Shown: positions 3,390 through 56,329 of the stretch, one piece after another
How the letters are laid out: every line of letters starts with the position of its first letter
How positions within the stretch are numbered: position 1 is the stretch's first letter
Assembly: GCA_964036045.1 (NCBI GenBank)
Contig: OZ038378.1
Coordinates: 198,028,001-198,092,000, forward strand
Direction: 5' to 3'
DNA from: Eutreptiella sp. 'Long Island Sound 2002'
Lineage: Eukaryota > Protista > Euglenida
DNA: 64,000 nt
Translations under genes and position numbers: made by a program
Notes under the pieces: generated by a model
What the model saw: only the letters and a program-made list of their open reading frames with translations
Databases searched by the model: none
Told to the model about the DNA's origin: nothing

Positions 3390-4530
3390 TCTTAGCATTA
3401 CCAGAGTGTAAAATAAGAGGCAAATTTTGCACGCCGGAACACCTCAACAAAGGCTTTGGTGGGAGACATATGCCCAATCAACACCCCTAGATGTTTGAAC
3501 AAGGTATTGATCTCAAAAGCAGTGGTGTTGATGCAATCATTTGCAGAGCCGGGCGGCCGTCCTTTCAGTACAAAGGCAGATTTGGTGGGATGGATTTGTA
3601 ACCCAAAGGCCCGTGAAAAGGCCGTAAGGGCATTCAAGGTGACGTTCAAAGCCACACTAATGCCTGCAGCCGAAAAGGTACACAACAAGTCGTCCACATA
3701 CAGGTAAAGTCACGGTGCACATGCGGAAGGCCACAAAAGGCAAAGCAACTAAAAGACAGACTGAATGAGAAGATCCCCTTGAGCAATGCCTGCCATCTAG
3801 TGGAAAACCACAAACATAACAACCGATTGTCCCACACAAAACATGTAAAAACAATGTAGGGGCTGCATTACTAGTTGCACGAAGGCCAAAGGTAGACAAA
3901 CATACTCCAACACATTTTGGATGAACTCATGGGACCGTGACAAGAACACATTCTCATAGTCCACACTTAGTATGGCCATGGAGGCCAACGACTCCCACTT
4001 AGTGTGTACCCCCCAAATGCAATGCAACATCTAGCAGCCCTCAATGTTGCCCACTTGTGCAGAAGGGGTGATTTGGACAAACAACTGTTCAACTTGGATG
4101 AGTAACACGGTCACCATGACTTTTGTTTTACCTGCTAGACTGCGATGGATCGTAGCTTGGGGATGTTGGAGGCCCCCGCAACCTTGGGGATAATGGACAT
4201 AATCCCTGTACCCAGACGGCTTGCAACACTCGATGCATGCTAGGGATCAACATGTCTTGGATAGACCTTCAACGGCAGGCCATCCAGCCCAGGGGAGGCT
4301 GCTACCCCTTGCCTCTCGAAGGCCTCCGCCACTACACTCTCACTAGGGGGGGTCAACTTCCGCACCTTTTGAGGTATCTGCAGAGAATTCAGGTATTTTT
4401 CACGTTTACTCCTCGTGATGCTAGGGTTGGCAGATGAGATACTTGTCCAATGATCTCACAAGGCGCCGCATACTTGGGCAAGGTCCGCCAGCACCCGTCC
4501 TTGGTGATCTCTTACTCATGCCATTTTCTG
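3390..4530 (-). mobile_element. Decayed non-LTR retrotransposon, reverse transcriptase fragment
   Basis: LYVDDLL (YxDD) near 3690, GLQIHPTKS...FKHLGV (thumb), AILSVDYENVFLSRSHEF (DFxKAFD-like) and IMSIIPK upstream. Many stops and frameshifts. Confidence 0.75.
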
Positions 4531-4556
4531 TATTGCTTGCACATTGACCATCATTA

Positions 4557-4849
4557 GGGGGCGTTTTCGCACAGCGCGCGCACAGCGCCAATTATTACGG
4601 TGATTATCCAGGTAACAACCCTGAAAACCACCCACCTGCGGAATCATGCAAAATCAATTCAAAACTCAAAAATTCAAACATCGGATGCTTGCCATGGGTC
4701 CCAGGGACCTAAATTCTGCCCCATATAGCCCCGTCCACTGCAGCAGCCATTCAATGACGTCCTTTCAATCTTCTGAACTTACCGAACTCCCGGTGGTGGA
4801 GAACAGCCAACTTTTCGCACAGCGCGCGTACAGCGCACGGTACGCCCCC
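4557..4849. mobile_element. PIF/Harbinger (Tourist-like) MITE, 293 bp
   Basis: TTA|GGGGGCGT ... ACGCCCCC|TTA gives an 8-bp TIR and a TTA TSD. The motif TTTTCGCACAGCGCGCG(C/T)ACAGCGC occurs near both ends in direct orientation. Confidence 0.75.
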
Positions 4850-5765
4850 TTAGGTCGATATGCTTTTGCCTTTGCTGACTGGAGACCTGGCTCAATTGCT
4901 TATCGGCAACGATGCCACAGGGCAACGACAATTGCTCGAGTCGTATTTTATCCTATGACTGCTTTTCAACAAGGGCAAGTAGCATGGAGTAAGCTGAGGT
5001 GTGGGTCCGTGGCTGCAAGCCTTGTGCAAACAGATGTCTGCAAAGAGATACATCCTTGGGTGGGGACGTGCTGTAGTGTGGCATCCCGAAGGAGCGCGAG
5101 AACCGGGATTGCAATGTTTGGATTGGTTGTTCTCAATAAAGGCTGTCACCTTGGCTTTAATAATGTGTTCTACTTTAATCCACATGTGTAGGGCTTGAGA
5201 GTAGCTCATGGAGGGCAGCGGGGGGTGGGGGGGGCGCTTTTCTCTTCCTGTTGTAACCTCTGGACAGTTGTAACCTCCCACAGAAAGGACGTCGGACAAA
5301 GCCAGCAGTGTGGGTGGGGGTTGAAGATTGGTTGTTGCACCTTCTCAGCGAAGGCCTTATGGTCGAACTTCCCCACGTAAGTAGTGAAAATCCCTGAGAC
5401 ATTGTTAGCCATGTGCTTGGGCACATGTATTCCATTTAACTTATGCAGCAGTGATGCTGTTTTGGCTGGGTTCTTATTGTCACAGTAGGCTGGCCAGGAA
5501 CATTCTCTGGGCACAGACATGTTTATATGGTCAAAATGCACGTGCGGCCAGATATCAAGCAGGCCCAAGCGCCCAAGCGCCGCAACCTCACATTCCTAGG
5601 CGGCAAGCACCTGTTCATCTTCCACCTTGGGGGGGACAATACCGTCATATGCATCAACACCTGAGACACATCCGATAGTTGCGTGCGCTCGCACCAAATG
5701 AGTCTACTGGCGCTAGTGCTCTTTGGGATCAAGATCAAAGTGTGCTGAAGTGAGGCATACCCTCT

Positions 5766-5854
5766 GTTTTTCCGTGTTACTACAAATGAGATAACACGGG
5801 TTTCACGGGTTTTTCCGTGTTACTACAAACAACTGACACAACACGGGTTTCACG
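5766..5854. repeat. Two-copy ~43-47 bp tandem repeat with internal hairpin
   Basis: GTTTTTCCGTGTTACTACAAA at 5766 and 5809. Each unit contains the inverted arms CCGTGTT...AACACGG. Confidence 0.7.
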
Positions 5855-6155
5855 TGGAAGAACAACCTCAATATTCCAGCGACGGTGTACAACAATCAGC
5901 CCCCCCCCCCCCCCTGCCCAGCATTAGACAGGGTGGAGACCAGCTCATAGTCCCAATAGTCCCAAAAAAATTTTTGAAAAATTTTGGTCATCATTCACTT
6001 GTGAGCCCTCAAAAAGAGGACAGGTTGTCAGCACTTTCACCATACAGGTTGTCACCAGGTTCAGGGATAAGAGAAGGCTGATGGACAAGGGTGAGGAAGG
6101 TACAGGCACCCGGGGCGTGCTCGGTTCACGAAGGGCTGGATGTTAAGGGTACAAC

Positions 6156-6797
6156 CTGTCCATTCCAGACAAACAGCGGCTTCACCAAACAGTACAGCAG
6201 GATGACGATGGGGCCGGACCACAGCTGCCGGATGCGCTCCACCGCCTCGAACCGCCCCGGCGTGACCACCGTGATCAGCGTAGCATCCCCCGCCCAAAAG
6301 CCCTGGCGGCGGGTGTCCACAACAGTTCTGAAGCAGCGCTGCGTACAGATGTGGCAGCACTCAACCTTCAGGCCCTCCTTGGTCTTTCTCTGGTATTCCC
6401 CAACGTACGGCGGCAGGGACACCGCATGCTTCCGGGCCAGCGAGTCGGGCGGGAAATCAGGATAGAGATTCCAAGGAGGCCAGGGCTTTGCAAGCGAATG
6501 GTTGACTCCCGACCGATTGACCTTACACCAGCTCAGGCAGTACTGCTGCGCGCCAATCCACTGGTCATAGCGCTTGACAAAGTCGCGCCAGTGGGTCTCG
6601 GTGATATTGGCTCGCTCCTTCCACGAAACTGTACTGTTTGTGCGGGATGAGCGGAGCTCTGCAGCGCTGCCGTTGGTGCCCACTTCCTTTGCGCCCCCGT
6701 CGAAGGCCATTGCACTGGAGGTCCCATTGAGGCCATCGCCGGAGCCCAGAACAACGACAAGGATCCCCAGTACTGCGACCAGTGCAAACGGCTGCAT
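6156..6797 (-). CDS. GT49 (LARGE/B4GAT1-like) glycosyltransferase paralogue 2, exon 1; remaining exons expected left of the window
   Basis: N-terminal hydrophobic anchor MQPFALVAVLGILVVVLG, Cys-rich stem, DATLITVVTPGRFEAVERIRQLWSGPIVILLY. Phase-0 donor CAG|GTTGTA at 6155, the same position as in paralogue 1. Confidence 0.75.
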
Positions 6798-12155: not shown

Positions 12156-13478
12156 AAGGGGGGGGGGGAGGGTACTGCAGAGCCACGCTGCAGCAGAGCA
12201 GTGCAGAAACCCTCGGTAGGTGCGTAGGCACGGGCGGCTGAGGGCACCCTACCCCTGAGCAGGCGCAGTCTACAGAGTGTGCAGAAATATTTGCATCCTC
12301 AAAGCAGTGGTCCTGCTTTGTTGAGCATGTCTTTTGATCGCTCAAATGCCATGTTTTGCTGCTATTTGTTGTCGTGCTGCTTCTCTTGAAAGGTGTCCAG
12401 GTAAGATCAACAGAAATGAGGGCTCTTGGACCATCTAAAATGACGGGCCCCGCATAGGCCAGTCTCCGAAACAGAGTCGTTCTGGCTGCACCATGCAACC
12501 ACCCGCTCCACGGGCACACCATGCCCCACTGCAAGGTGCACCGACCGCATGTTCATGATTACGAGTGCCATGCGCCTTCGTGTGGCGTTGACAATTGCTT
12601 GCTGATAGCCTCCCACTGGGTCTGGAGTGCTGCTCCTTGCGTCTCACAGTAATGATGCACACTTGTCAACATGGTACGTTGTCTCCGCCACACTTCAGCT
12701 TTCGAACACGCACCGGATCCTGCTGGAGACAAGGGCGAGAGCGGAGCAGCTGGGGACCGCTGAATTGAACACGGTGAAAGTGCAGAGTAGTCCCCAGAAG
12801 AAATCGGGGTGAGTGGGCTGTGCAAGAGTGGGGCCATTGCAAACGACAACAGACCACTTGCTCCACTGGCCCCCAAGATTCGGGTGACGAAAGCATTCCC
12901 ACTCGAAAATCCTGCAAATCTACTGGATTCTCCTCTTGATGTTTTTGGGCCTTTGGCTACAAATAGAACAGTATCTCCCAGCATCCCCTTAGCCCCTTGC
13001 ACCGCTACCGCAGCATCATCCTCACAACCGTGCTCCGCAACCCCGTAACGACCGCCCACAATCATTCACTCTGCAATGACACGCATAACACAGGATCTCA
13101 AATGTCACCACAATGATCATCCCCAGGCACACACGGCAAAACCGGGCATTAACAAGTGTTGCATGCCTGGCGCAAAACACCTGGGGCCAGGGAATTGCAA
13201 GCAAGACTTCAAAAACTGTTTCCAGATCCCCCATTGTCTCAAACTTTGATCGATGTTTGACAGCCTTTGGCGGAAGTGGCTCCGGGGTGCGGTCACCGAC
13301 CTGATGTACCCGATGCCATTCCAAGACCCAAGGTGGGGTCCAGGGTGGATCCCCTTGGCAGGCAGCAAGCAGTGACAAAATCAGAACTGGGCCCCGGTGG
13401 TTCACATCCATCGTCGCATTATTCAACAACTCATCCTTCCCCGAGATCGACCAAACCCTCTGCAAGATCACAGACTAC

Positions 13479-14123
13479 CTGATCTGCGGCGCAATTCATC
13501 ATCAGTTGCCGGCTGGTACGGAGCCAGCGATTGTATCCGGTCAACTTCACCCCATCGGGATTCATCACCTTCTTTGCCAGTGGCTCAGGGCAACCCGAAT
13601 GGTTGGGCACGTTCAACTGTTCGACCACATTAGCATGGAAGATGTCCTTCGCACTCGCATGGAAGGGTTGGATCACGCCCTGGCTCAGTAGCTCGTAGCA
13701 CTGCTGGAAAGTAGTCGGGTAGTCCTGGAGGTTCGGCATGCGCCACCTTGTCTCGTCCTCCTCTCCGTGGCACTCCACAACCTCGAAGTGTGGCAGCACG
13801 AGACCGAATGCGTTCAGGGTCCGCAGCCACCTCACTGAGGCTATGACGTCCTCGTACAGATTGGCCGACGGGAGGAAGTCTGCGTCCATTGGCAACAGAA
13901 ACCGCGTGCGCACGCGATCCATGGCCGCGTTGCGAAGGGAGTTGATGGAAAGTAGCGGCGAGGTGCTCATCTGCCGTTCTGCAGTGGAGTTGTACCGAAG
14001 AAATACCCTGCGCCTCATGTTGTAGCGGTACTCCATTACAAGCGTGTTCTTCCACCGCTTTACTTTCATGCGCACCGCGCGCTGCTGCTCTTCGCTCTTC
14101 CTCTGGTCTGGGTCAACCTCGGC
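13479..14123 (-). CDS. GT49 glycosyltransferase paralogue 1, exon 2 (catalytic DxD region)
   Basis: Acceptor cctcttcctctcttcacgcag|GCC at 14124 and donor CAG|GTAGTC at 13478, both phase 0. INSLRNAAMDRVRTRFLLPMDADFLPS is the GT49 NxLRNxA...DxDF motif. Confidence 0.85.
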
Positions 14124-14642
14124 CTGCGTGAAGAGAGGAAGAGGTGTGACGGCTAGTACCCCCCTCTTCTCCACCCTCACCGCCTTCATGCCTCTCTGTG
14201 CCATTCTCTATCTCCCCTTTCTCGTATTCTCTGTGAGTCACCAGCGCTTTCCCTCATGCCCTTGTGGATTCACCCCTGCGCAACTAGTCTCTGTCTAGGC
14301 CTGAAAATGTTGCGTCACAAGAGGAGGGCAGAGCGCTAAATTGCTCCTTGGCGGGTGTGGATCACTCGCATGCAGTGCACCGTGAGTGAACCAAACATGT
14401 ACCCGTTTCTCTGATTTGAATCAAGTGGCCTTGTTGTGCAGCGGTGATGTTGATACCCTGAAGAGGGCATGACACCACATGGGTCAGCCCCAAACCTTGT
14501 GGGCCCACCTTTGAGGTGACCACGTGGAAAGAAGGGCTAGAAGGTGGCCCCACCCCACCGCATGAGGGACCTACGGCCAAGTGTGAACCATACACTGTAG
14601 ACAGAGACGAACTGTCGGTTGGTGACATGGAAGATGTTGACA

Positions 14643-32340: not shown

Positions 32341-34399
32341 AAATCCCTAGGGATGCAAAAAAAAAATTGAAGGGATTTTTCGACCGAAATCCCGACCAAA
32401 ATCCCGAAACTTCTACCAAAGTTGGGAGCGGCCCTTCCGAAATTCCATGGGATGCAAAAACATCGGAAGCGTTTTTGGATGGATTTCCGTCCAAAAACGC
32501 TAAGCATGACAAAACAAAAGCCCCCACCCCCCTAGAGCCGTTGATTTTGAACAAAAAGCCCCCCCCCCCCCCCGGGCTTTGGGCATCCACTCATATACAT
32601 ATGAAAGTACTATACAATGCTCCGCCACTCCTCAAAGAGAATTTGCCCCGGTTACCATGGCCAAATGGGGACAATCACAGGTCCCCAATCCTAGAACCGA
32701 CTCACGGAGCGCCAGGTTCCCCTGCAAATACATAAGAAACTACCATACAATGCTCTGCCACTTCTCAAAGAGAAGCTGCACCGGCTACCATGGCCAGGCG
32801 TGGCCAATCACGGGTCCCCATGTTTGTGCACAAAGACAAAGGACTGGGGTGGTCTTTCAATCGCAAATTCATTAGGTTGTGGATTGCAGGCATTCAAATA
32901 ATGCTACGGTGCTATGCAGGCCCTCCAAGGCCATCCATAGAACCCTGGGGTAGGGGCGTGTTCGGCATGGAGAGGCAGTACTTCGAGCGGGAAAGTCTGA
33001 TGGGTGTGACAAAGCAGGACCTCCCAGGCCACAGAAACCCGTACTTTCAATAGCAAATTCATTCGCTTGTGGCATCCCGTGTTTCCCAGGCATCCAATCA
33101 CTGCTACCTAGGCCCTCGAAGGCCAAAGGCACCTGTACTTTCAATCGCAATGTGTTTTGCCCCATGCCTCCCATAGCCCCTAGGGTAAGCGTATGTCAGA
33201 GGTGTGTAACGGCGTGACAACCTGGCAATAAGATAAAAACAAAAGTTTGGGTGGGTTGTAAGGCTCACGATTCTTGAACCATTCAACCAGCATGGGTTGG
33301 TCAAAGTTGAGGGTGGGCAACACCGTTTTGTTTTGATTGGTGGCCATAAACAACCAATCATCATGAGCCGCAGGATCCTCCTCGGTTACCAACCCTGCCT
33401 GCTCGTCTAGAAGAATCCGTTCCTCGATTGGGAAAGGGCCAATCGCCAAATTTTTGTAGGCGGTGCTCCCCACTCCCCACGGGTCGTGTTTTGATGGGCT
33501 TGTGTCCCCTACGAAATAATTTGTCGTTTTGCACTTGACGGAGAAACGTTTGTTCAAGGTAGTAGGGAAAACATTATTTCGTGCATTTACGTGTGGGTCG
33601 GACGGAAAGATCCTCGCCAAAAGACACTTAAACATATTTGGTTGCACATAGGGCTGAAGCTCCGTGCACTACGTAGTAGCGGGCAAGGATTCACTGTAGA
33701 CGTGTCTGGATAATCATAATGGAAGGTGTTTTCGATATTGACACTATTCGCATCGACAAGGGAGAGAACAACAAACAATCAAAACCCCAACCAAAAACCA
33801 AGCCTGCTGGCAGCAGCCACCCCCCACATAGGCCACGGTAGCACCCGTATTTGTACTCCATCCTTCCCGCCTTAGACCGAGGTCAATCCTGCAAGTAGGG
33901 CGCCCACCGGTGCACCGCGCCTACATCCGGCGGCCTTCGGTTTGTTTGGTTGCACGCCTATTGTCTGCCCCCGCTAATGCCTCTCCTGTTTGTGGCTCAC
34001 CACGGGCCATCTGAGTGAGTGTGCATGTGTCTGGGCCTAGCCGAAGTCACCGCCGTACGGGTGGATGGACAGGGGCGTCGGTTGGGGGTGTGGGTGCCCT
34101 GGCAAAAGCGAAGTCTGTTGTGGGGTTGTGGGGTGCAGCGACAACAACGAGGTGCGCTGGTGTGTCACCGCACCTGGCATTGTGCTTTGACGGGGATGGT
34201 AGTACACACACCTGAGAAGTGTAGTACGAGTACAGGGGCCCCAGACTAGCGGAGTTGCCGGAGTGGCAAGGCACCGGTGCCGTCGTGCCCCTCCCCCCCA
34301 GAGTGTTGCATCCCACCCAATTGGTTGTCAGAGTGGGAGGTCCCCGAGCTGCAGCTCTTGGGACATGCCCCCCAGTCCCCTTGGGACAACGACGCTGAG

Positions 34400-34425
34400 A
34401 CTTAGGCGGCTCTATACGCACGTAG
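34400..34425 (+). repeat. Left terminal inverted repeat of the Academ-like element
   Basis: Exact reverse complement of 40895-40920. Confidence 0.9.
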
Positions 34426-35080
34426 CAAAGTTGCCACAGTTCCCAAATGGGTACCACCCCAAAACGGGGGCTGAAAAACCACTTTGAAAAATTGCACAAT
34501 TGTGCCTTGCAGGGAACACCCCCAAAAACTTGTGAATTATCCAAAATGACTGTGTGTAGGGGGTACAACATGTGCCAGTCAAAAGTCATGTATCCCCTTC
34601 AAATTTGGGCACTGCAGTGTCCATCCAAAGAAAAATCCAATTCTTCGAAATCATCCGCTGCTGCATTTCAAACCACACCGTAAAATGCAACCTGAAAAAT
34701 GAAGCAAGGAGGACGACAGGCAAACACATGCAAAACTCTGGTTTGCTTTTTGTTACCGCGTCTGCTGACCCAGTCACTGTGATTGTATGCGAAGCGTGAC
34801 AAATAATGCACCACCAGTGGTGCCGACAAACAACGGAGGCGCCGCCAGTGCAGCCAATGCAATAATAAATGACGGCAACAATGCCTGCAAAAGAAGTGGC
34901 GCAGCAGGGGTAAAAAAATGGCGAGTCGCTGAATTTGGGCACTGCAGCGCCCAAAATTACCAAAACATGAAAAAGGGCACCAATCTCACACCTGCATAGA
35001 ACAGGACGCGCGACAGTGTGCAAATCGAGGCGAAAAAACTACTGACATGGACACAGGCAGTGCCAACCGCACAACGCAGT

Positions 35081-37754
35081 CTACTTCTTTGGTGGAGCCT
35101 TCTTACCCTTGGCCTGACCTACTTTGGCGTGAAACATATTGAGGGGAGTGCTGTCCTTGGCCTTTTTGGCTGGCCTTTTGGGGGGATCATCAACCTCATC
35201 CCCACTGTCGTCGGAGGACGGCTTCTTCTTGCTGGGGGTGCTCCTCTTCTTGCTGTCACCACCTCCGACCAGCACGATCTCGTCATCCTCCTCTTCCTCC
35301 ACATCGTCCCCCCCCTCCTCATCTTCCCCTTCCCCAGGCCGCTGCACCACAACTGGCATACAGTCCCTAATCCTTGGCATCCAAGCGTCCCGGTTAACCA
35401 AGTAGACACAGTCCATCTCCTGCACATACGCCGCTAGCTGTTCACAGAACTCGTTAAACAAACCCTGGCGCCCAGTGAAGCAAGCTGCCAGACAGGGGGA
35501 CTCAAGAAGGCAGGACAGGAGCTGTGCTGGCAATACAGGCGATGCTGTCAAAAGCAGGAGCCAGACTTCATCCTCGGACTGTCTGTCGCGTCGGGGAACA
35601 ATACCAAGCACACGCAGAAGCCAACCAGCCGCTGCCAGACCAATGGTGCTGCCGTATGCACCCTGATCGCAAATGAAAATATTCGGGACCTTCACCCTAA
35701 ACTTGTCGGGCACACAGAAGCAAATAGTCCTCTCCTCGAACCGATAGGTCGGGTGACCGACTGCCTGATCAAAAAAAGAGGTCATAATATACTGCCAGCC
35801 TCCACACTCCTCAGAGTCGCGCAATTGATTAACCAGGAACTTAACGTCGGCCGCCATTCCACCAATAGCCACAGGTACCAACTTCGCAGCAACCTTCAGC
35901 ACCAGCGGATGGATATCGTCCATTTGTTCCTTCGTACACTCAATGAAGACCTGTTGTCAAAAGCACATTTCATTACAGATGGGCACTGCAGTGCCTAAAG
36001 TGACCAGCAATGCGAAATCGATCCCATTCTTATGCCTAATGGTTGCATACCGCTTTGCACTCCCTCAATGCAATCGTATACGGGATAGCCTTGCCAGGAA
36101 CCAACGCAATTGCCTCTGCCCGAGCTCCGGTTGCTTCAGTCCCATCGTGCGGCTTGTTGAGCCAGATAGTTGTTGATTTCTCCCCATCAGTCGTTGTCAC
36201 TGCAGTTTCCTTGACAGGCCTCGCCAGCGCAATCCTCAAGTCAACCCGTTCCTCATCCTGCCACAGCGGTGCTTTCTGGATGGTGTCCCAGCTTGGTAAG
36301 GGATTTTCGGCACTCCGGGTCCATTTCCCCAGTGACAATTTGGCGGCCCTCAGCGACTTTGCCAGCAGTTTGCGGACTCTTTGCATTTCATGCACGTTCA
36401 CTGTTAGAACAGGAGACCACTGGTACCACTGGGATCGAAACAGCCTTACGTCGTGGGTCCGGGGGGGGAGGGGGGGTCAACAGCGATCGCGCCAGACCCT
36501 GCCGCCCCATAAACATACGTCGAGAAGGATGGATGAGCGTGTTGTCCGGGTGAAGGTACAGCATCTCCCACAGGCGGTCCCGCTTCAATAGTCTGGCCTT
36601 GGCATGTAGTCCTGCGATCTTGGCCCCATCTCCAGCCATGTACAGCAGTATTTCATCCATCTGGTCACCATGCAGTCCCGTCAACGGCCGCAGAGTGTAG
36701 GGGTTGAGCACTGCAGTGCAAAAATTAGGGTCGCATCGAATTTGGGCACTGCAGTTCCCATGATCACCAAAAGACGACGAAAACAGGTGCTCAGAGGACA
36801 TAATACCTTCACCGGCAGTCTTCTCAAAGGTGTCAATAAACTCAGCCACGCGGCCACCAGATATCTGCAGTAATGAAACGAGCGGTCTCCAATTTTTCCA
36901 GATTGAGTCCTGGCAGGGATACAGTGTTGGACAGGCCACAGGTACGCAAAGGACTGACAACGGTGGTCTCATCGTGCATCTCTCATACCACAGATGTTTT
37001 CTCGCCCAGCCGGCCACACTTCCGCAGAGCCACCAGCAGCATCTCTTTCGCTTTGCCCTTCTGCACTTCAGTGCAAATTCGAGCGGCCACTTGTCCCATA
37101 CTCAGCTTGCTCACTGAGTGTTGTACCGCATTGTGATCGCCTCCAATAATCTCTCTGATGCCAACAGGACAGTCGTGTCTGATCTCCTCGCAGTAGACGT
37201 GTTGTAACCAGTCCGGCAGTGCCCGTGACTTCTCACAGTATTCTCGGTGAAGTCTTTGGAGTGCCGTCAGGATATGAGCCCCGCCCAAGCAGTAGGGAAT
37301 TTCAGCTGATAGAAAAATGCACCACAGGGAGATGGGAGATGGGAGATATCAGCGAGATGGGCACTGCAGTGCCCAAACGACCAGACTGTGTGAAAATAAC
37401 GACGGGCGTGTGACAGGATGGTAGTGTACCTTCGTTTCGCCATATGAGAATGTTTGAGATAGGCCGGCAGGGTGGATTTGTCCTCAGGCTTGCGATCCGC
37501 GATAGTACTCAGTCCTCGTCCCTCTCTCTGGTCTGCCCACGCGTGAGGTCGGTGTCAAACTTTATCTTGGTCAGCTGTATCTTGACCAGCTCCTTTTTGA
37601 TCCACGTTGTCCGGAATGTTTCCGTTGCCCGGTCTGTCCCCGTCCGCTTCACTGGAGCCTGCCCCGGCTGCGCCCGTGTCTTCTCTGCTGTGTGAACGGC
37701 TTGCGATACGGTCTGCTGCTCATCCCCTTCCGGCAGTTCGGTATCCGAAGGCAT
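35081..37754 (-). CDS. Six-exon accessory gene of the Academ-like element, ~726 aa, unknown function, one in-frame TGA
   Basis: Exons 37754-37430, 37305-36989, 36864-36807, 36710-36450, 36400-36051, 35950-35081. Five phase-compatible GT-AG introns (124, 124, 96, 49, 100 nt) join five separate ORFs. TGA at 37511-37509. Acidic tract and basic NLS-like C-terminus. Confidence 0.65.
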
Positions 37755-37835
37755 AGCTTAGCAAAGGGGCTAACAAAGGGTCACACGACACACTACAAAA
37801 GGCCACGGGGCTGCAAATTGTTGATTTACAAGCTT

Positions 37836-40141
37836 CTAATGTTGATGACTACTGGCAGCGCTCGACGATTGAACACAGATGGCAGAAATAGCATCACAGT
37901 CGGATGCACCTGGTAAAAATCGAGGGTGAAACTCATTCGGCTCCGAAAGGATAGCCACGGGGGCGTCGGAATCATCACTGTGAACAGACACTGCTTCTGG
38001 AGGGGGGGGGTCCGGGTCCCATCCATCATCACCCACAAAATCAGCAGCCCTCAGGTCTGGATATCCGGCTGCCCCACCAGCGGGGGGGGGGGCTCCTCAT
38101 CACTGTCACTGTCGCCATCAGCATTGGGGGGGGCGGGTATCCGGGCGGGGTCCCTTTGCGCAAAAGCGCGTGCTGGCCGGCGTCGCTTGTACCGGTCTGG
38201 TGTATTACATGCGCGTAACATGTCCTGTGCCTGTGCTACTGTTGTGTCCACATCACCTGGAGGACGTTGTGGCACGTGTCTACCCAGCTCTGTCATCACG
38301 TCAGCATCAACTTTAACAGGTTTAACAAGTGTCTGCAATGTCTTGGCACATAGATCTCGGTAATGCTCTGCAGTGAGCACCGTATCTAGTGCACAAGGAA
38401 AATCCATCTTGGCAGGATCCCACCTGTCTTGCACGATACTCGACTTCTGACTGGACCAGACCAGGGGGGGTATAACACCAACATCAAATCCCGCCATCAA
38501 TCTGGTGAAACGACGATCAACCAGTTGTGGCAGTCCCTTGGGAACATTAACGTACTGCAGGTCCTTTGGGGTCTGGTCTGCAACGGGAGTGAGTATAAAC
38601 AGGTCATGCACCTGTTGCAACGTACAGTTCCCAGGGTGTTGTGCCATTAAGTGCACAACACGGCTTAACAGGGCCTCACACGGTTCCTCACTGTGTGCCA
38701 CACCACGTAAGCGGGCAAACCACTGGGACCACAACAGCCTAGCAACAACAATGGTGCGCACATATTCAACCTTGTCCTCATAACCTAGGGTGAGCCTCAG
38801 AAGGACGTGTAGGCAACGGCTCAACAATGGCCCTGCAGCGTGCTGCTCTCCCTGTGCAGACCAATGACAATCCCTCACTTGCGACCCAATAATAAACAAG
38901 GCTGGAATGTAACCATACAGCAGTGTTACCAACCCTTGCACTTGTGCAAGAAGTGTGCTGTGATTAGCGTTACCCGGTCGGTGCAAACCCCTTAGAGTCT
39001 GTAACTTCTGTTCCAAAGGTTGGCGCCACTTGTGGGCCAAGTGCAAGAGAACCAGAATCATACGCTCCATATAGATGAGTTTCGGAAAGTTGGGCACTGC
39101 AGTGCCCAAATTGAGTGAACCATAGGAAAAATAGGTAAATAAAGGGAAGAATCTTCTGTAGCACAGGGTTACACAATATTTATATGGGTGCCATGTGCCA
39201 TACACTACCGGGGTACGTGTAATGAACAGGGGCACGTTGTACCGAGCATAGCTGATGCTGTAAACGAGCTTAAGGACACGGTAGTGGATATTTTCGTCAA
39301 CCAACAATGGAAGACGGTGCTGTGTGTGCTGCTGCACCTCCTGGAGCCCGTGAATAATAGAGACAAGGTCGGGGGTAGTGGACACAGTTAGGTCTGTGAG
39401 AAAAAAGGGGGTCCAAGCTGGGCTGGTAACATTAGCCCGTTGTATGTCCAAGGGACAACGAACATGTTGAAGGCGGATGGGGTCGTCCATCAACCCTTGC
39501 AAGCCATCAATGAAGTTTTTATGGCTCTGCACCAACAAGTCTGCAGTGTACCCAATCCTCTGCCGCAAGACCGAGAGGCTAGGAAAAGACGGCATAACGT
39601 CAACACGTCGTTTCAAGAGTATGATAGCACCAGCTGTACAATTAAGGGACCGGTTCTCATTACCAGGCACAGGCCGGAAGTTACGTCTATAAAAATTATC
39701 AAACCACAGAACAGCGGGTTAACCTTCCAAGGTCTGCCAAAGACTGGTGCACGCAGTTGCTCCTTGAACTGCAAAGGAGGGTACATTGTAAGAACATTGA
39801 CCCATGTGAGCCAAACACCTACGTTGCACACGACTCTTGGGTTGAACACCTACAGCCCTCTTGGCACGTGGACGACACCTCTTGTGTAGAACAGACCATA
39901 TATTAAAAATCTCTTGCTCAGCAACACGGAACCATTGGTCCGGCAGACAATTAACGGTCCGCCTGTCCCTTTGTTGGATGTATTCACCAACAGACCGCCT
40001 ACTTCTCCACTCCAACCAGAGATCTAACACCCACGTACAAAACGCATCGGCACCCTTATCCACACCCACAGCCTCAGACAGATCCTCCTTTGAAGCATAT
40101 ACCTTCGAACTAAGGAACTGCCGGAAGGGAGCCGCATCCAT
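37836..40141 (-). pseudogene. Academ-type DDE transposase (~770 aa) with one nonsense codon and one homopolymer frameshift
   Basis: ORFs 40204-39719 and 39670-38051 share a frame, separated by TAA at 39721-39719. Motifs: LAHMGQCSY, LWFDNF (D1, ~39700), LNCTAG, LVDENIHYR (D2, 39298), GTWHPYK, EYVR, SEEPCEALLS (E, 38677). An acidic tail continues in another frame after the G11 run at 38082-38092. Confidence 0.7.
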
Positions 40142-40894
40142 GGACAAAAGTCCTGTTCGCAGGCAGCAAAGGTAAGGGGACAAAGAAAACAGAGACACTA
40201 TCACGAAACAAACCTAATGCGGCATAGACCAAAAGCAGCTAGCGAAGATCCAAACAATGTATCCCCCAATGGACGTGGAACGTTCCAAAGCCTGCGTACA
40301 CTCCAAGGTGGCAGTCAGACAACCGGCAATATATTTCCAATGAGCAGAGGATGAGTACCAACGTCCGATGATTCATACGTCCTTTGTCAGGTGTTACGCA
40401 ATGGGAACCAATAGGAGTGAAATACGGAGTTTTCAATTTTTTGGACACTGCAGTGCCCAAAAGTACTGGAAGTCCATTTTCAAGTGCTCATTTGGACAGG
40501 AATGGAAGTGATTGGGCAACGTACATTGTACGTGGCCTTCCGAGTATAACACCGCGGTGCGATGACCCATGGATAACGGGTATGCCAAGTTTTGATGCAT
40601 GTTGCCGCAGTATGACATCACCTGTGGAGATGACTACAGAGGTGTACTGGATAACCCACTGAAAAAAGCCATTTCAAATTTTTGGGCACTGCAGTGCCCA
40701 AAAATTTTAAATGATACAATTTTCAGCCCGGAATAGGGGGTGTATACGTACACCTCTGGAAGCAACAAAAGGCGAGGTTGTTGTATCCCACGATGAAAAT
40801 CCACGTGGGGTTGGCCGAAAAAATGATATGCTTTTTTTAGGTGCAAAAAACGGATGTTGAAATCGCCATGAATCGTGCCTTTTAGCAACGAAGT

Positions 40895-40920
40895 CTACGT
40901 GCGTATAGAGCCGCCTAAGT
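40895..40920 (-). repeat. Right terminal inverted repeat of the Academ-like element
   Basis: CTACGTGCGTATAGAGCCGCCTAAGT. Confidence 0.9.
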
Positions 40921-42269
40921 GAGAAGCCCCGGTCACAGCTGGTTTCCCCGCCACGACCCATCCTGACAGCCCTCCCTCGCCTCCATCCCCACGCTACACG
41001 CCCTCACCACGTCCAATTTCCTTGCCATCCCACCGTACCCTACAACGAAAGCTCGTACCAGCAAATGCCGAATTGACCCCCCGCCCCTCCTTGCAAAGGC
41101 CACTGGCCCCATCCACCCTTGATTAGAGCAGTAGTTGGCCCACTCCCTCGAGTCTCTGTGTGGGTACTTCAACATGGGGTAGGCACGGTATCAATTTGCT
41201 ATGTGCCACAAGGGGCCATTAGCACTCTAGAAGGGGGGGTGGTGTGCCTCCCGCTCCCACTTTTTGGACCACAGTCTAGAGAGGGCACGTGTGATCCTCG
41301 CGCCCACAGTACTCCATCCACCCCCTTTGCAACCCCCGCTGGGGAAAGAATAGGTTGCTGGTATGTGCCAATTCAAAAATGTGGCACCTTGGAACATAAA
41401 ACGGGGCACGAAAAGAGGCAAAGGAAACATTGTGCGGGTGTATGGGGCACAAGTTCAAAGTTGTATGGTCCCACATGGCTTGTGTCCTTACCATCAACGA
41501 CATGAAACATAACAAAGCACAACAAATCACCATGAAAAGGATGAAATTCCGTCCATTTTGCACAAAAAAGCGGCAGTCGCCCATGCCCCTGGTTGACCAC
41601 ACCACCGCACGTGTCGCTCTTCCCTCCTAGCATCCCAACAGGTTAGCCGCCCTCCGGGGCTCCGCACACAGCTTTTCTGAAGGAGGGGTGGGTTGGTGGT
41701 CAGCCAAAAAAAAGGAACCAAAAAAAGAAACCAAGCATTTTGTCAGGGTAGGGATCATCATGGTGTGTATGTCAAATTTTAGTCACGCAGAAAAGTGAAA
41801 AGATCCTGCACTAGCGAAGAGGACATTTGATTTCATAAAAGGGGGCATTCCGGTCGGACCCGAAGAGTTCACTTTGCTCACTTTCGAAAAATGTAATTGG
41901 AAGGAAGGGGTTAGAGGGGTTGGGGCACAATAGCGCAACAGAAACCAGGTTCAATGCAAGAATACAACACACGATTTTCGTATTCGACGAGCACTCCGGA
42001 GACATGTGTGGGGAGAGTACGATTGGTGGGATTGTGCCATGGGATAGGGGAAGCAATTTTGAGAGCGTGGCTCCTTGGAGATCCAGGCAATTGCCGATAC
42101 CCTTTTGGGAGCAGTGCTCTGGAAATGGGGTTAGATTGTTTGCGACCAATCATCGGAAGCCACGCCCCGGAATTCATAAGCATTTTTCCAACCAATTTCG
42201 GCGGCGTGGCTTGTGAAATCCCATGGGATGCAAAATCATCAAAAGTGTTTACAGATGGGATGTTCCCAA

Positions 42270-54817: not shown

Positions 54818-56329
54818 TCAGTGGGTTCGCTCCTGCACAGAAACATCCGGCAACGTCATGAGGACCTCAGCCGTGAGTGCAGGCACTGTCTTCAATGCAG
54901 CTAGCGCTCGCAGACCATCCGCTCCAATCTGCGTGTCCTGCAGATTCAACTGGAGGGCTTTCAAGGAGGGCGCGCCCTTCAGTGCAGCGAGCGCCAGTGC
55001 GCCTTTGTCCCCGATTGGGGTATGCCTCAGGTCCAAATCAAGCGATGTCAGAGACGTCGAGTCCTTCAGCGCAGCTATTCCCTCAGCACCATGGTCCCCA
55101 ATTTGGGTCCCGCTGAGGTGCAGGCCGAGGGTTGTCAACGATGCAGCATCCGCCAGCGTAGCCAACGCCTGGGCACCATCGTCACCAACTGCGGTTGCAG
55201 TCAACTGCAGGACTAGGGAACGCAGTGAGCCTGCGTCCTTCATCGCAGCAAGCGCTCGCACGCCGCGGTCACCCACTTGAGTCCGGCTCAGGTCCAAGTG
55301 CAGAGAGTGCAACAAAGGCGTGGCCTTCAGGGATGCGAGGGCCTTTGCCCCAGCATCTCCAATGCGGGTGCTGCCCAGATACAGACCCACGGACCGGAGC
55401 GATGATGCATCCTTCACCGCAGCGAGCGCCCCGGCGCCTTGATTTCCGATTTGGGTGCTGCCCAGGTACAGATGGAGGGAGTGCAACGCTGGCGCCTCCT
55501 TCAGGGCAGCAAGTGCCTGCGCACCTCCGTCTCCAATTTGAGCAGAATGTAGATAAAGAGTAAGGGCTTGCAATGATGACGCATCCTTCAGAGCTGCCAG
55601 GGCCTGTGCGCCGTTGTCGCCGATGTGGAACCCCCCGAAGGTCAGGCTCAAGGCTTTCAAAGACGGTGCATCCTTCAACATTGCCAGAGCGTGGGCTGCC
55701 GGGTCCCCAAGGTGAAAGCTGTAGAGATCCAAATGGAGGGTCTCTAACGAGGCGGCATCCTTGAGTGCTGCAAGTGCTGCTGCACCACTGTTCCCAAGCG
55801 TGCTGGTCCTCAGGCTCAAAGTAAGTGATTTCAGTGACCGTACATCCTTCAGCGCCGCGAGCGCCTGCGCGCCATTGTCCCGCACTCGGGTGCCGATCAA
55901 GTTTATGCTCAAGGAGTGCAAGCGGCGCTGAGCGCACAGCAGGGTCGCAAGTGCATTTGCACCGTTGTCTGCAATCCGAGTGCACATTAGATCCACTTCG
56001 AGCACCAGCAAAGGTGTGTTCTTGAGTGCAGCAAGCACATGTGAGCCATCATCAGTCATGCCTCTGGAGGTGATGGTCAGCGTACGTATTGCCCTGTCAC
56101 TAAGCATTGCCATTGTCTGTGAAGCATTGTGACGGTCCGCATCCCATGCCACGTGGCGTTTTTCCAGGGCGAGCCACGTCGCATGGCATACATGGCTCAA
56201 CACAGAGGACTGCAGGAAATCTGAGATGCAACGCCACTCATCGGCACATAGTCGCACAGCCATGTCCTGCATGCGGAGAGGCAGTACAGTGGCAAAGGTG
56301 CCAGCAGGGGCAACCGACATAAGAGGCAT
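54818..56329 (-). CDS. Leucine-rich repeat protein (RI-like, ~14 x 29 aa) with F-box-like N-terminus, 503 aa, intronless
   Basis: Repeat consensus IGDxGAxALAALKDAxSLxxLxLxLxxTx. N-terminal LCADEWRCISDFL...LSHVCHATW resembles an F-box. The start codon is uncertain (several Met). Confidence 0.9.
   Translation of the reverse strand: MPLMSVAPAGTFATVLPLRMQDMAVRLCADEWRCISDFLQSSVLSHVCHATWLALEKRHVAWDADRHNASQTMAMLSDRAIRTLTITSRGMTDDGSHVLAALKNTPLLVLEVDLMCTRIADNGANALATLLCAQRRLHSLSINLIGTRVRDNGAQALAALKDVRSLKSLTLSLRTSTLGNSGAAALAALKDAASLETLHLDLYSFHLGDPAAHALAMLKDAPSLKALSLTFGGFHIGDNGAQALAALKDASSLQALTLYLHSAQIGDGGAQALAALKEAPALHSLHLYLGSTQIGNQGAGALAAVKDASSLRSVGLYLGSTRIGDAGAKALASLKATPLLHSLHLDLSRTQVGDRGVRALAAMKDAGSLRSLVLQLTATAVGDDGAQALATLADAASLTTLGLHLSGTQIGDHGAEGIAALKDSTSLTSLDLDLRHTPIGDKGALALAALKGAPSLKALQLNLQDTQIGADGLRALAALKTVPALTAEVLMTLPDVSVQERTH

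Follow-up and report, generated by a model that had tools for sequence, protein, structure and literature searches.

A CTTAG-ended, two-gene DNA transposon with 5-bp target site duplications in Eutreptiella, probably related to Academ only distantly, if at all

DNA transposons fall into few superfamilies, whose definitions rest on the transposase, the length of the target site duplication (TSD), and the termini. P elements and hAT elements duplicate 8 bp, while Transib combines a 5-bp TSD with CACTATG termini. In Academ, TSD length has been linked to the encoded helicase or nuclease, being 9 to 10 bp in AcademH and 3 to 4 bp in AcademX (PMC10045372), and the superfamily has been reported in fungi, cnidarians, and lancelets (PMC5751038). 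Here, we analyzed a window of 64,000 nucleotides from the euglenid Eutreptiella sp. 'Long Island Sound 2002' (assembly GCA_964036045.1, contig OZ038378.1, positions 198,028,001 to 198,092,000, forward strand), and all positions below are those of this window. It holds an element that is very probably a structurally complete, genetically dead copy of a high-copy, two-gene, cut-and-paste DNA transposon. Its transposase, 5-bp TSD, companion gene (gene 2), and palindromes fit no named transposon group tested, and our verdict is a distinct DDE transposon lineage, related to Academ distantly at most. In the literature searched, we came across neither an account of CTTAG-ended elements that make 5-bp TSDs nor one of this transposase family.

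The ends were fixed against a sister copy (L001:5223-11743), retrieved via the intact transposase P0001. The two copies can be aligned across all 6519 bases, and their homology ends exactly at CTTAGG and CCTAAG, which are the termini of both; the sister is flanked by a TSD of its own, CATGT. The element and its ends are as follows.

34401 to 40919, minus strand for both genes: whole transposon, 6519 bp, 97.6% identical over its full length to L001:5223-11743
34396 to 34400, no strand: left copy of the TSD, TGAGA, from the end comparison with L001 and the flank sequence
40920 to 40924, no strand: right copy of the TSD, TGAGA, from the same comparison and flank sequence
40895 to 40919, minus strand: 5' terminal inverted repeat (TIR) in gene orientation, 25 bp, CTTAGGCGGCTCTATACGCACGTAG, perfect complement of 34401 to 34425
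34401 to 34425, plus strand: 3' TIR in gene orientation, 25 bp, perfect complement of 40895 to 40919

A preliminary description of this locus, made from the sequence, had proposed a perfect 26-bp TIR, a 3-bp TSD (GAG), and, as an alternative, ends of the form TAG...CTA (34403 to 40917). The perfect repeat is where it had been placed: the arms 34400 to 34425 and 40895 to 40920 are 100% complementary, and the 26-mer occurs at these two sites alone in the window and had no match in 100 shuffles. However, the repeat is 25 bp long, because the 26th pair is made of the last A and the first T of the two TSD copies, complementary by chance. Likewise, GAG is the middle of the 5-bp duplication TGAGA, and the alternative ends are wrong, since identity to L001 stops at CTTAGG/CCTAAG. 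Five-base TSDs were also found at three elements of the same assembly (ERZ25074135), namely TTGTA at L003, ATGCC at L004, and CGGGT at L005. These three and L013, which is from this assembly too, start with CTTAG or CTCAG and finish with CTAAG. Altogether, a 5-bp TSD flanks six of six elements from three families (the window copy, L001, L003, L004, L005, and L013); for a single element, the chance of such a five-base match is about 1 in 1,000. No usable ends could be read at L011 and L012.

One of these copies, L013:6678-10997, is a 4.3-kb internal-deletion derivative of the window family in which positions 1 to 2300 are fused to 4500 to 6519. The junction is a 2-base GT microhomology, the TSD is ACTTT, and the left terminus is mutated to CTCAGG. 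Such a deletion matches the expectation for interrupted gap repair after excision, and hence a cut-and-paste habit. Two rearranged loci were also seen. L004 contains an additional copy of the right-end TIR (L004:9446-9470) directly after a truncated transposase open reading frame (ORF), which suggests a nested or rearranged copy, and a copy of a fourth family (L011:9001-12269) is split by a long terminal repeat retrotransposon with RVT_1 and RNase H domains directly downstream.

The element carries two genes in the same orientation, as had been described, both on the minus strand. The first encodes the transposase.

38051 to 40141, minus strand: transposase gene, intronless, 696 codons plus stop, with predicted catalytic residues D148, D282, and E486; defined by the intact sister product P0001, the AlphaFold (AF2) model, fold matches, and invariant residues
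39719 to 39721, minus strand: TAA nonsense codon of the transposase, private to this copy (other copies encode Lys), from P0001, which reads K, and from read contigs

The ordered motifs noted earlier (G.CSY, WFDNF, N.TAG, VDEN, GTWH, EYVR, and EEPCE) all lie in the transposase reading frame. At base 39721, every covering contig (from three of four public runs) has the Lys base; since all of them and P0001 read Lys, the TAA is private to the window copy. The element had been called complete, and this holds for its structure only: the transposase is broken by this in-frame codon, and gene 2 by a TGA at 37509 to 37511. The family itself is large, with about 1,800 clusters at 50% identity, and has no name yet. 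P0001, an intact protein of 696 residues, represents a 288-sequence cluster at 90% identity, a profile built from 15 relatives matches 1,791 clusters (50% identity) in public data, and this genome has hundreds of copies. The metagenome scan returned two short loci only, the scan of viral contigs for the transposase none, and a transposase profile search matched nothing among PDB sequences. In the mechanism that we propose, the transposase would bind the TIRs, excise the element, and insert it with 5-bp staggered cuts, using the predicted triad D148/D282/E486; the window copy could then move only in trans, with proteins supplied by intact sister copies.

The AF2 model of the transposase has a predicted local distance difference test (pLDDT) score of 84 and a predicted template modeling score of 0.81. 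In the comparison with solved structures, the top 30 entries were all DDE transposases, aligned to residues 117 to 525, and from these matches it follows that the RNase H fold and an inserted helical domain are present. VIA Z scores were 9.6 for the P element, 9.2 for Hermes, and 7.8 for Transib, with Tn5, an IS256-type enzyme, and RAG1 lower. D148 (in WFDNF, strand 1) and D282 (in LLVDEN, after strand 4) are invariant in 45 sequences, as are E485, E486, and E489 at the start of the helix that follows the insertion domain. Measured to the ends of the alignments with Hermes and P, the position of E486 fits the known catalytic Glu residues of those enzymes. The search of predicted structures, in turn, was led by DUF6589 and unnamed proteins of Rhizophagus, cnidarians, and lancelets (Foldseek E value of about 1e-8). 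The DUF6589 cluster reached template modeling (TM) scores of 0.57/0.55 across 497 residues.

We consider it quite improbable that the transposase is unrelated to Academ and belongs in, or nearer to, hAT, P, Transib, or Mutator-like elements, with the DUF6589 likeness reflecting general architecture only. The solved P element, Hermes, and Transib structures do match at Z scores of 8 to 10. P element and hAT transposases (Hermes) share the RNase H-like core and the helical insertion before the catalytic Glu, and they gave the best solved-structure matches (Z 9.2 to 9.6). However, the window transposase has no THAP, BED, or hAT dimerisation domain, is about 10% identical in sequence to these enzymes, and goes with a TSD of 5 bp rather than 8. 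Pfam scans of family members found neither the hAT dimerisation domain (PF05699) nor any hAT, P, or Mutator-like element match, and in the same predicted-structure search the hAT cluster reached a TM score of only 0.36 and IS66 and Mutator clusters about 0.3 (0.28 to 0.36 for the three), all far below DUF6589. Transib shares the 5-bp TSD and the same general fold class (Z 7.8), but the termini here are CTTAG, not CACTATG, the fold match is weaker than those of DUF6589, the P element, and hAT, and the window element has two genes.

Academ membership was the more serious question. Like Academ, the element is a eukaryotic TIR-bounded, cut-and-paste transposon with a long DDE transposase, Academ often carrying an extra enzyme gene. 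The RNase H-fold DDE transposase expected of Academ was found (AF2 model, top matches, and the invariant D148, D282, and E486), and the DUF6589 fold neighbors come from fungi, cnidarians, and lancelets, taxa with Academ. The preliminary description equated DUF6589 with the Academ transposase, which we take as an assumption that the taxonomic spread makes plausible. Sequence similarity to Academ was gauged by proxy, with PF20231 (DUF6589). None of 52 distinct family members matched PF20231 or any Pfam transposase model, 45 of them scanned at E<=10, and none of the 52 reached the PF20231 gathering threshold. Nor did the window's own ORF pieces match DUF6589 or any Pfam transposase. The earlier assignment to a DUF6589-like DDE transposase stands for the fold, with DUF6589 the best fold match, and not for sequence similarity. 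No XPG or superfamily 2 (SF2) helicase match was found by Pfam in any reading frame of the element or its sister elements, in agreement with what had been noted before.

The element could nevertheless be a true Academ member that represents a third lineage, next to AcademX and AcademH, in which the XPG or helicase partner was lost and the TSD shifted to 5 bp, although we regard this as unlikely. The DUF6589 proteins are clearly the nearest fold neighbors, with alignments that cover about 500 residues, compared with about 330 for hAT, and the known Academ lineages already vary in TSD length and accessory enzyme (PMC10045372). The proposal runs against the failure of all 52 members to match PF20231 (45 of them even at E<=10), against a TSD that is neither 3 to 4 nor 9 to 10 bp, and against the missing XPG or helicase; it also leans on the assumed equation above. 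In place of those partners, the window element has a spliced, putatively ParB-like gene and private palindromes. The safe statement is that DUF6589 is the nearest known fold family, and that TSD length, XPG/helicase partner, and sequence similarity by the Pfam proxy all differ from Academ. The earlier suggestion of a new lineage is reasonable, shorn of its 3-bp TSD; the lineage may lie inside or beside Academ.

The second gene lies downstream of the transposase. The separate spliced gene announced in the preliminary description is supported by a six-exon model with conserved blocks and an intact frame in L001.

35081 to 37754, minus strand: gene 2, 718 codons in six exons, with five GT-AG introns between them; exon blocks kept with L003, L002, L004, and L007, intact ORF in L001
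37430 to 37754, minus strand: gene 2 exon 1, which holds the private stop; cross-family alignment and transfer to L001
37509 to 37511, minus strand: TGA nonsense codon of gene 2, private to this copy (other copies have TCA, Ser); read contigs (position 37510), and L001 reads S
36989 to 37305, minus strand: gene 2 exon 2, with the motif Y-C-L-G-G-A-H; cross-family alignment and transfer to L001
36807 to 36909, minus strand: gene 2 exon 3; cross-family alignment and transfer to L001
36519 to 36710, minus strand: gene 2 exon 4; donor at element position 4402 kept in L001
36051 to 36400, minus strand: gene 2 exon 5; cross-family alignment and transfer to L001
35081 to 35950, minus strand: gene 2 exon 6, including the stop codon; ORF and transfer to L001

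In translated comparisons, gene 2 appears as blocks conserved in shifting frames downstream of the transposase and in constant orientation, both in L003, L004, and L005 of this genome and in L002, L006, and L007 of other samples. Its exons are 25 to 45% identical across families, and the transposases of the compared elements are 30 to 42% identical. In the window family and in L003, intron 1 lies at the same residue, with AAG/GT donors and CAG acceptors. L004 and L007 lack it, and their continuous frames equal the spliced junction residue for residue. The other junctions were fixed by the same cross-family comparison, and the introns measure 79 to 124 nt, all GT-AG. Moved to L001, the model retains all splice sites and reads through 718 codons without interruption, the window copy having the one stop (TGA). 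Two candidates were discarded on the way: a frame-0 'exon 3', which proved to be a match at the DNA level translated in a wrong frame, and an intron 4 donor at element position 4471, which is not kept in L001.

Between the window copy and L001, the coding parts differ by 1.7 to 1.9% and the non-coding parts by 3 to 4%. These figures bear on whether gene 2 is a captured host passenger without a role in the life cycle of the element, which we hold to be very improbable. Such an origin would agree with the lack of any known domain by hidden Markov model (HMM) search. Nevertheless, gene 2 keeps its position and orientation in families whose transposases are only 30 to 42% identical, as well as in L002, L006, and L007 from other samples, and its divergence between copies is as low as that of the transposase (1.7% against 3 to 4% for non-coding sequence).

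The N-terminal third of the gene 2 product keeps the pattern I.ID...GQ(I/T)R..DDV....PP.P...W, followed by [YF].(L/I).G(Q/A)H...A. By language-model features, two members about 31% identical both rank DUF3723 first (0.94 to 0.95, with 150 to 184 shared features), with the ParB_N and DUF6551 clusters after it, and the model of the top DUF3723 match itself resembles ParB N-terminal domains. From these features, the gene 2 N-terminus probably adopts a ParB/Srx-type fold, a lead and not a demonstration. DUF3723 is an auxiliary gene of fungal Starships with an unexplained function (PMC9156397). By these features, no named family is closer to the gene 2 N-terminus, and, like gene 2 in our element, DUF3723 is a conserved accessory gene of mobile elements; Starships, however, move by a tyrosine recombinase rather than a DDE enzyme, and gene 2 has no HMM match to PF12520. 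ParB-like accessory proteins with nearby inverted repeats are also known from red-algal Plavaka elements and an Ectocarpus Sola1 element (bioRxiv 10.1101/2025.02.11.637652). Those elements, Plavaka PAG3 of Bostrychia and Sola1-1_Ec32, differ in three ways: they belong to the Plavaka/EnSpm and Sola1 superfamilies, their ParB domain is fused to an oxygenase or methyltransferase domain whereas no enzyme domain was found in gene 2, and their repeats form tandem arrays beside the gene whereas the palindromes here are single and scattered in introns and subterminal DNA. At the other end of the gene 2 product, the last 120 or so residues (35084 to 35440, minus strand) have a strongly acidic run followed by the lysine-rich stretches KKRSTPSKKKP and PKRPAKKAK, which look like nuclear localisation signals as read from the sequence. 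A tblastn comparison of gene 2 with phage records gave no match.

The palindromes form the last component of the family. The window family repeats GGGCACTGCAGTGCCC, mostly extended to TTTGGGCACTGCAGTGCCCAAA, over a length of 16 to 22 bp; there are eight matches with at most two mismatches against 0.09 expected, all within the element, and a degenerate ninth copy.

40684 to 40699, no strand: palindrome copy 1, GGGCACTGCAGTGCCC, 5' subterminal; pattern search
40443 to 40458, no strand: palindrome copy 2, 5' subterminal; pattern search
39092 to 39107, no strand: palindrome copy 3, within the coding sequence of the transposase, translated as GTAVP; pattern search
37359 to 37374, no strand: palindrome copy 4, gene 2 intron 1; L003 carries a different palindrome at the equivalent position
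36744 to 36759, no strand: palindrome copy 5, gene 2 intron 3; pattern search
36706 to 36721, no strand: palindrome copy 6, degenerate (3 mismatches), its central CTGCAG supplying the acceptor AG of intron 3
35981 to 35996, no strand: palindrome copy 7, gene 2 intron 5; pattern search
34937 to 34952, no strand: palindrome copy 8, 3' subterminal; pattern search
34607 to 34622, no strand: palindrome copy 9, 3' subterminal; pattern search

Two copies thus stand before the transposase start, one in its coding sequence, four in or at gene 2 introns 1, 3, and 5, and two after gene 2. Each family examined, including relatives from other samples, has a palindrome of its own: AATGAGCCATGGCTCATT in L003, GTGCGCGAGGCCTCGCGCAC in L004 and L005, CACCGCGAGGCCTCGCGGTG in L007, GACGGCGAGGCCTCGCCGTC in L015, and TCTGGGCGCGATCGCGCCCAGA in L014. 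In element coordinates, the positions in the window family and L003 match (3546/3545, 4924/4917, and 5968/5952), although the sequences are unrelated. Positions kept while the palindrome sequence differs point to a site co-evolving with a dimeric binding protein. Furthermore, the TIR and the palindrome have no common sequence, which calls for two specificities and modestly favors the gene 2 product as the palindrome binder. On this view, a dimeric DNA-binding protein would recognize the palindromes. The most likely candidate is the product of gene 2, acting through its ParB/DUF3723-like N-terminal domain, and this protein might coat or bridge the element so as to aid transposition by end pairing, retain the excised DNA, or mark the element's own DNA.

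A serious competitor, though not the one that we favor, is that the palindromes are bound by the transposase, as enhancer sites like those of P, Ac, and En/Spm, or act as RNA hairpins or splicing signals, with gene 2 serving a different role. Distant relatives on short contigs without a visible gene 2 have palindromes around and inside the transposase gene, two copies lie about 210 to 220 bp from each end, and one palindrome provides an intron acceptor. Binding by the transposase accords poorly with the lack of common sequence between TIR and palindrome, which suggests two specificities, and with the conserved intronic positions of copies well within the element. Also, ParB-like proteins are reported to stand beside inverted-repeat arrays in other algal transposons (bioRxiv 10.1101/2025.02.11.637652).

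Some single sites deserve mention on their own account. P0008, a 39%-identical relative, also reads GTAVP at the transposase palindrome spot, and this palindrome may derive from, or have been copied into, coding sequence. At 36706 to 36721, a candidate binding site and the splice acceptor of intron 3 overlap. L015 (at 75-126, 1332, 2075, and 2447-2611) and L014 (at 321, 937, and 3235) have several copies of their own perfect palindromes, including inside coding sequence; both come from metagenome ERZ888423, and their transposases are only 26 to 28% identical.

It is important to consider the points that weigh against our interpretation of a two-gene element whose second product binds the palindromes. 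The D148/D282/E486 triad was deduced from residue invariance and the secondary structure rather than by superposing side chains, and the link to Academ appears as DUF6589 fold similarity only. For gene 2, Pfam, PHROGs, NCBIfam, PADLOC, and a PDB profile search gave no ParB_N or related HMM match, and the AF2 prediction of its N-terminus (L007 orthologue, 11-row alignment) reached a pLDDT of only 33. Its product is the most likely palindrome binder by inference. No splice joints were found with four runs on the element, two of which look like DNA, and metatranscriptome contigs cross the intron 1 donor unspliced.

Other searches around gene 2 can be set beside these. Neither the ORF pieces nor the ORFs of the sister elements had a meaningful match in Pfam, PHROGs, NCBIfam, or PADLOC, and searches for spliced gene 2 transcripts with exon 6 and the L007 ORF gave genomic relatives only. 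Estuary metatranscriptome contigs from runs X1 and X2 (window 34930 to 40919) are 90 to 97% identical to both genes, short, and unspliced; they could be pre-mRNA of relatives or DNA carry-over.

A bolder and more tentative extension of our preferred reading, to which we give less than even weight, is that the family is a new eukaryotic DDE superfamily, a deep sister of Academ, with a built-in 'partition-like' module as its defining trait. In it, parS-like palindromes private to each family, placed in introns and subterminal DNA, would co-evolve with a ParB-type accessory protein, which would load along the whole element to join its ends or mark its DNA. Whatever its rank, the family is consistently marked by CTTAG ends and a 5-bp TSD, together with a companion gene and private palindromes. 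Should it prove separate from Academ, the annotation of transposable elements in algal and marine protist genomes would need a new category. The companion gene and its family-specific palindromes make it possible to test directly whether a DNA-binding protein encoded by a transposon co-evolves with the sites that it binds, and gene 2 adds to what has lately been reported on ParB-like accessory proteins of transposons in red and brown algae.

Outside the element, the neighboring long ORFs of the window, at 54818 to 56329 and 13431 to 14204 (both minus strand), include an LRR_6 leucine-rich-repeat protein (E value 8e-28) and a Glyco_transf_49-like piece (E value 2e-11).

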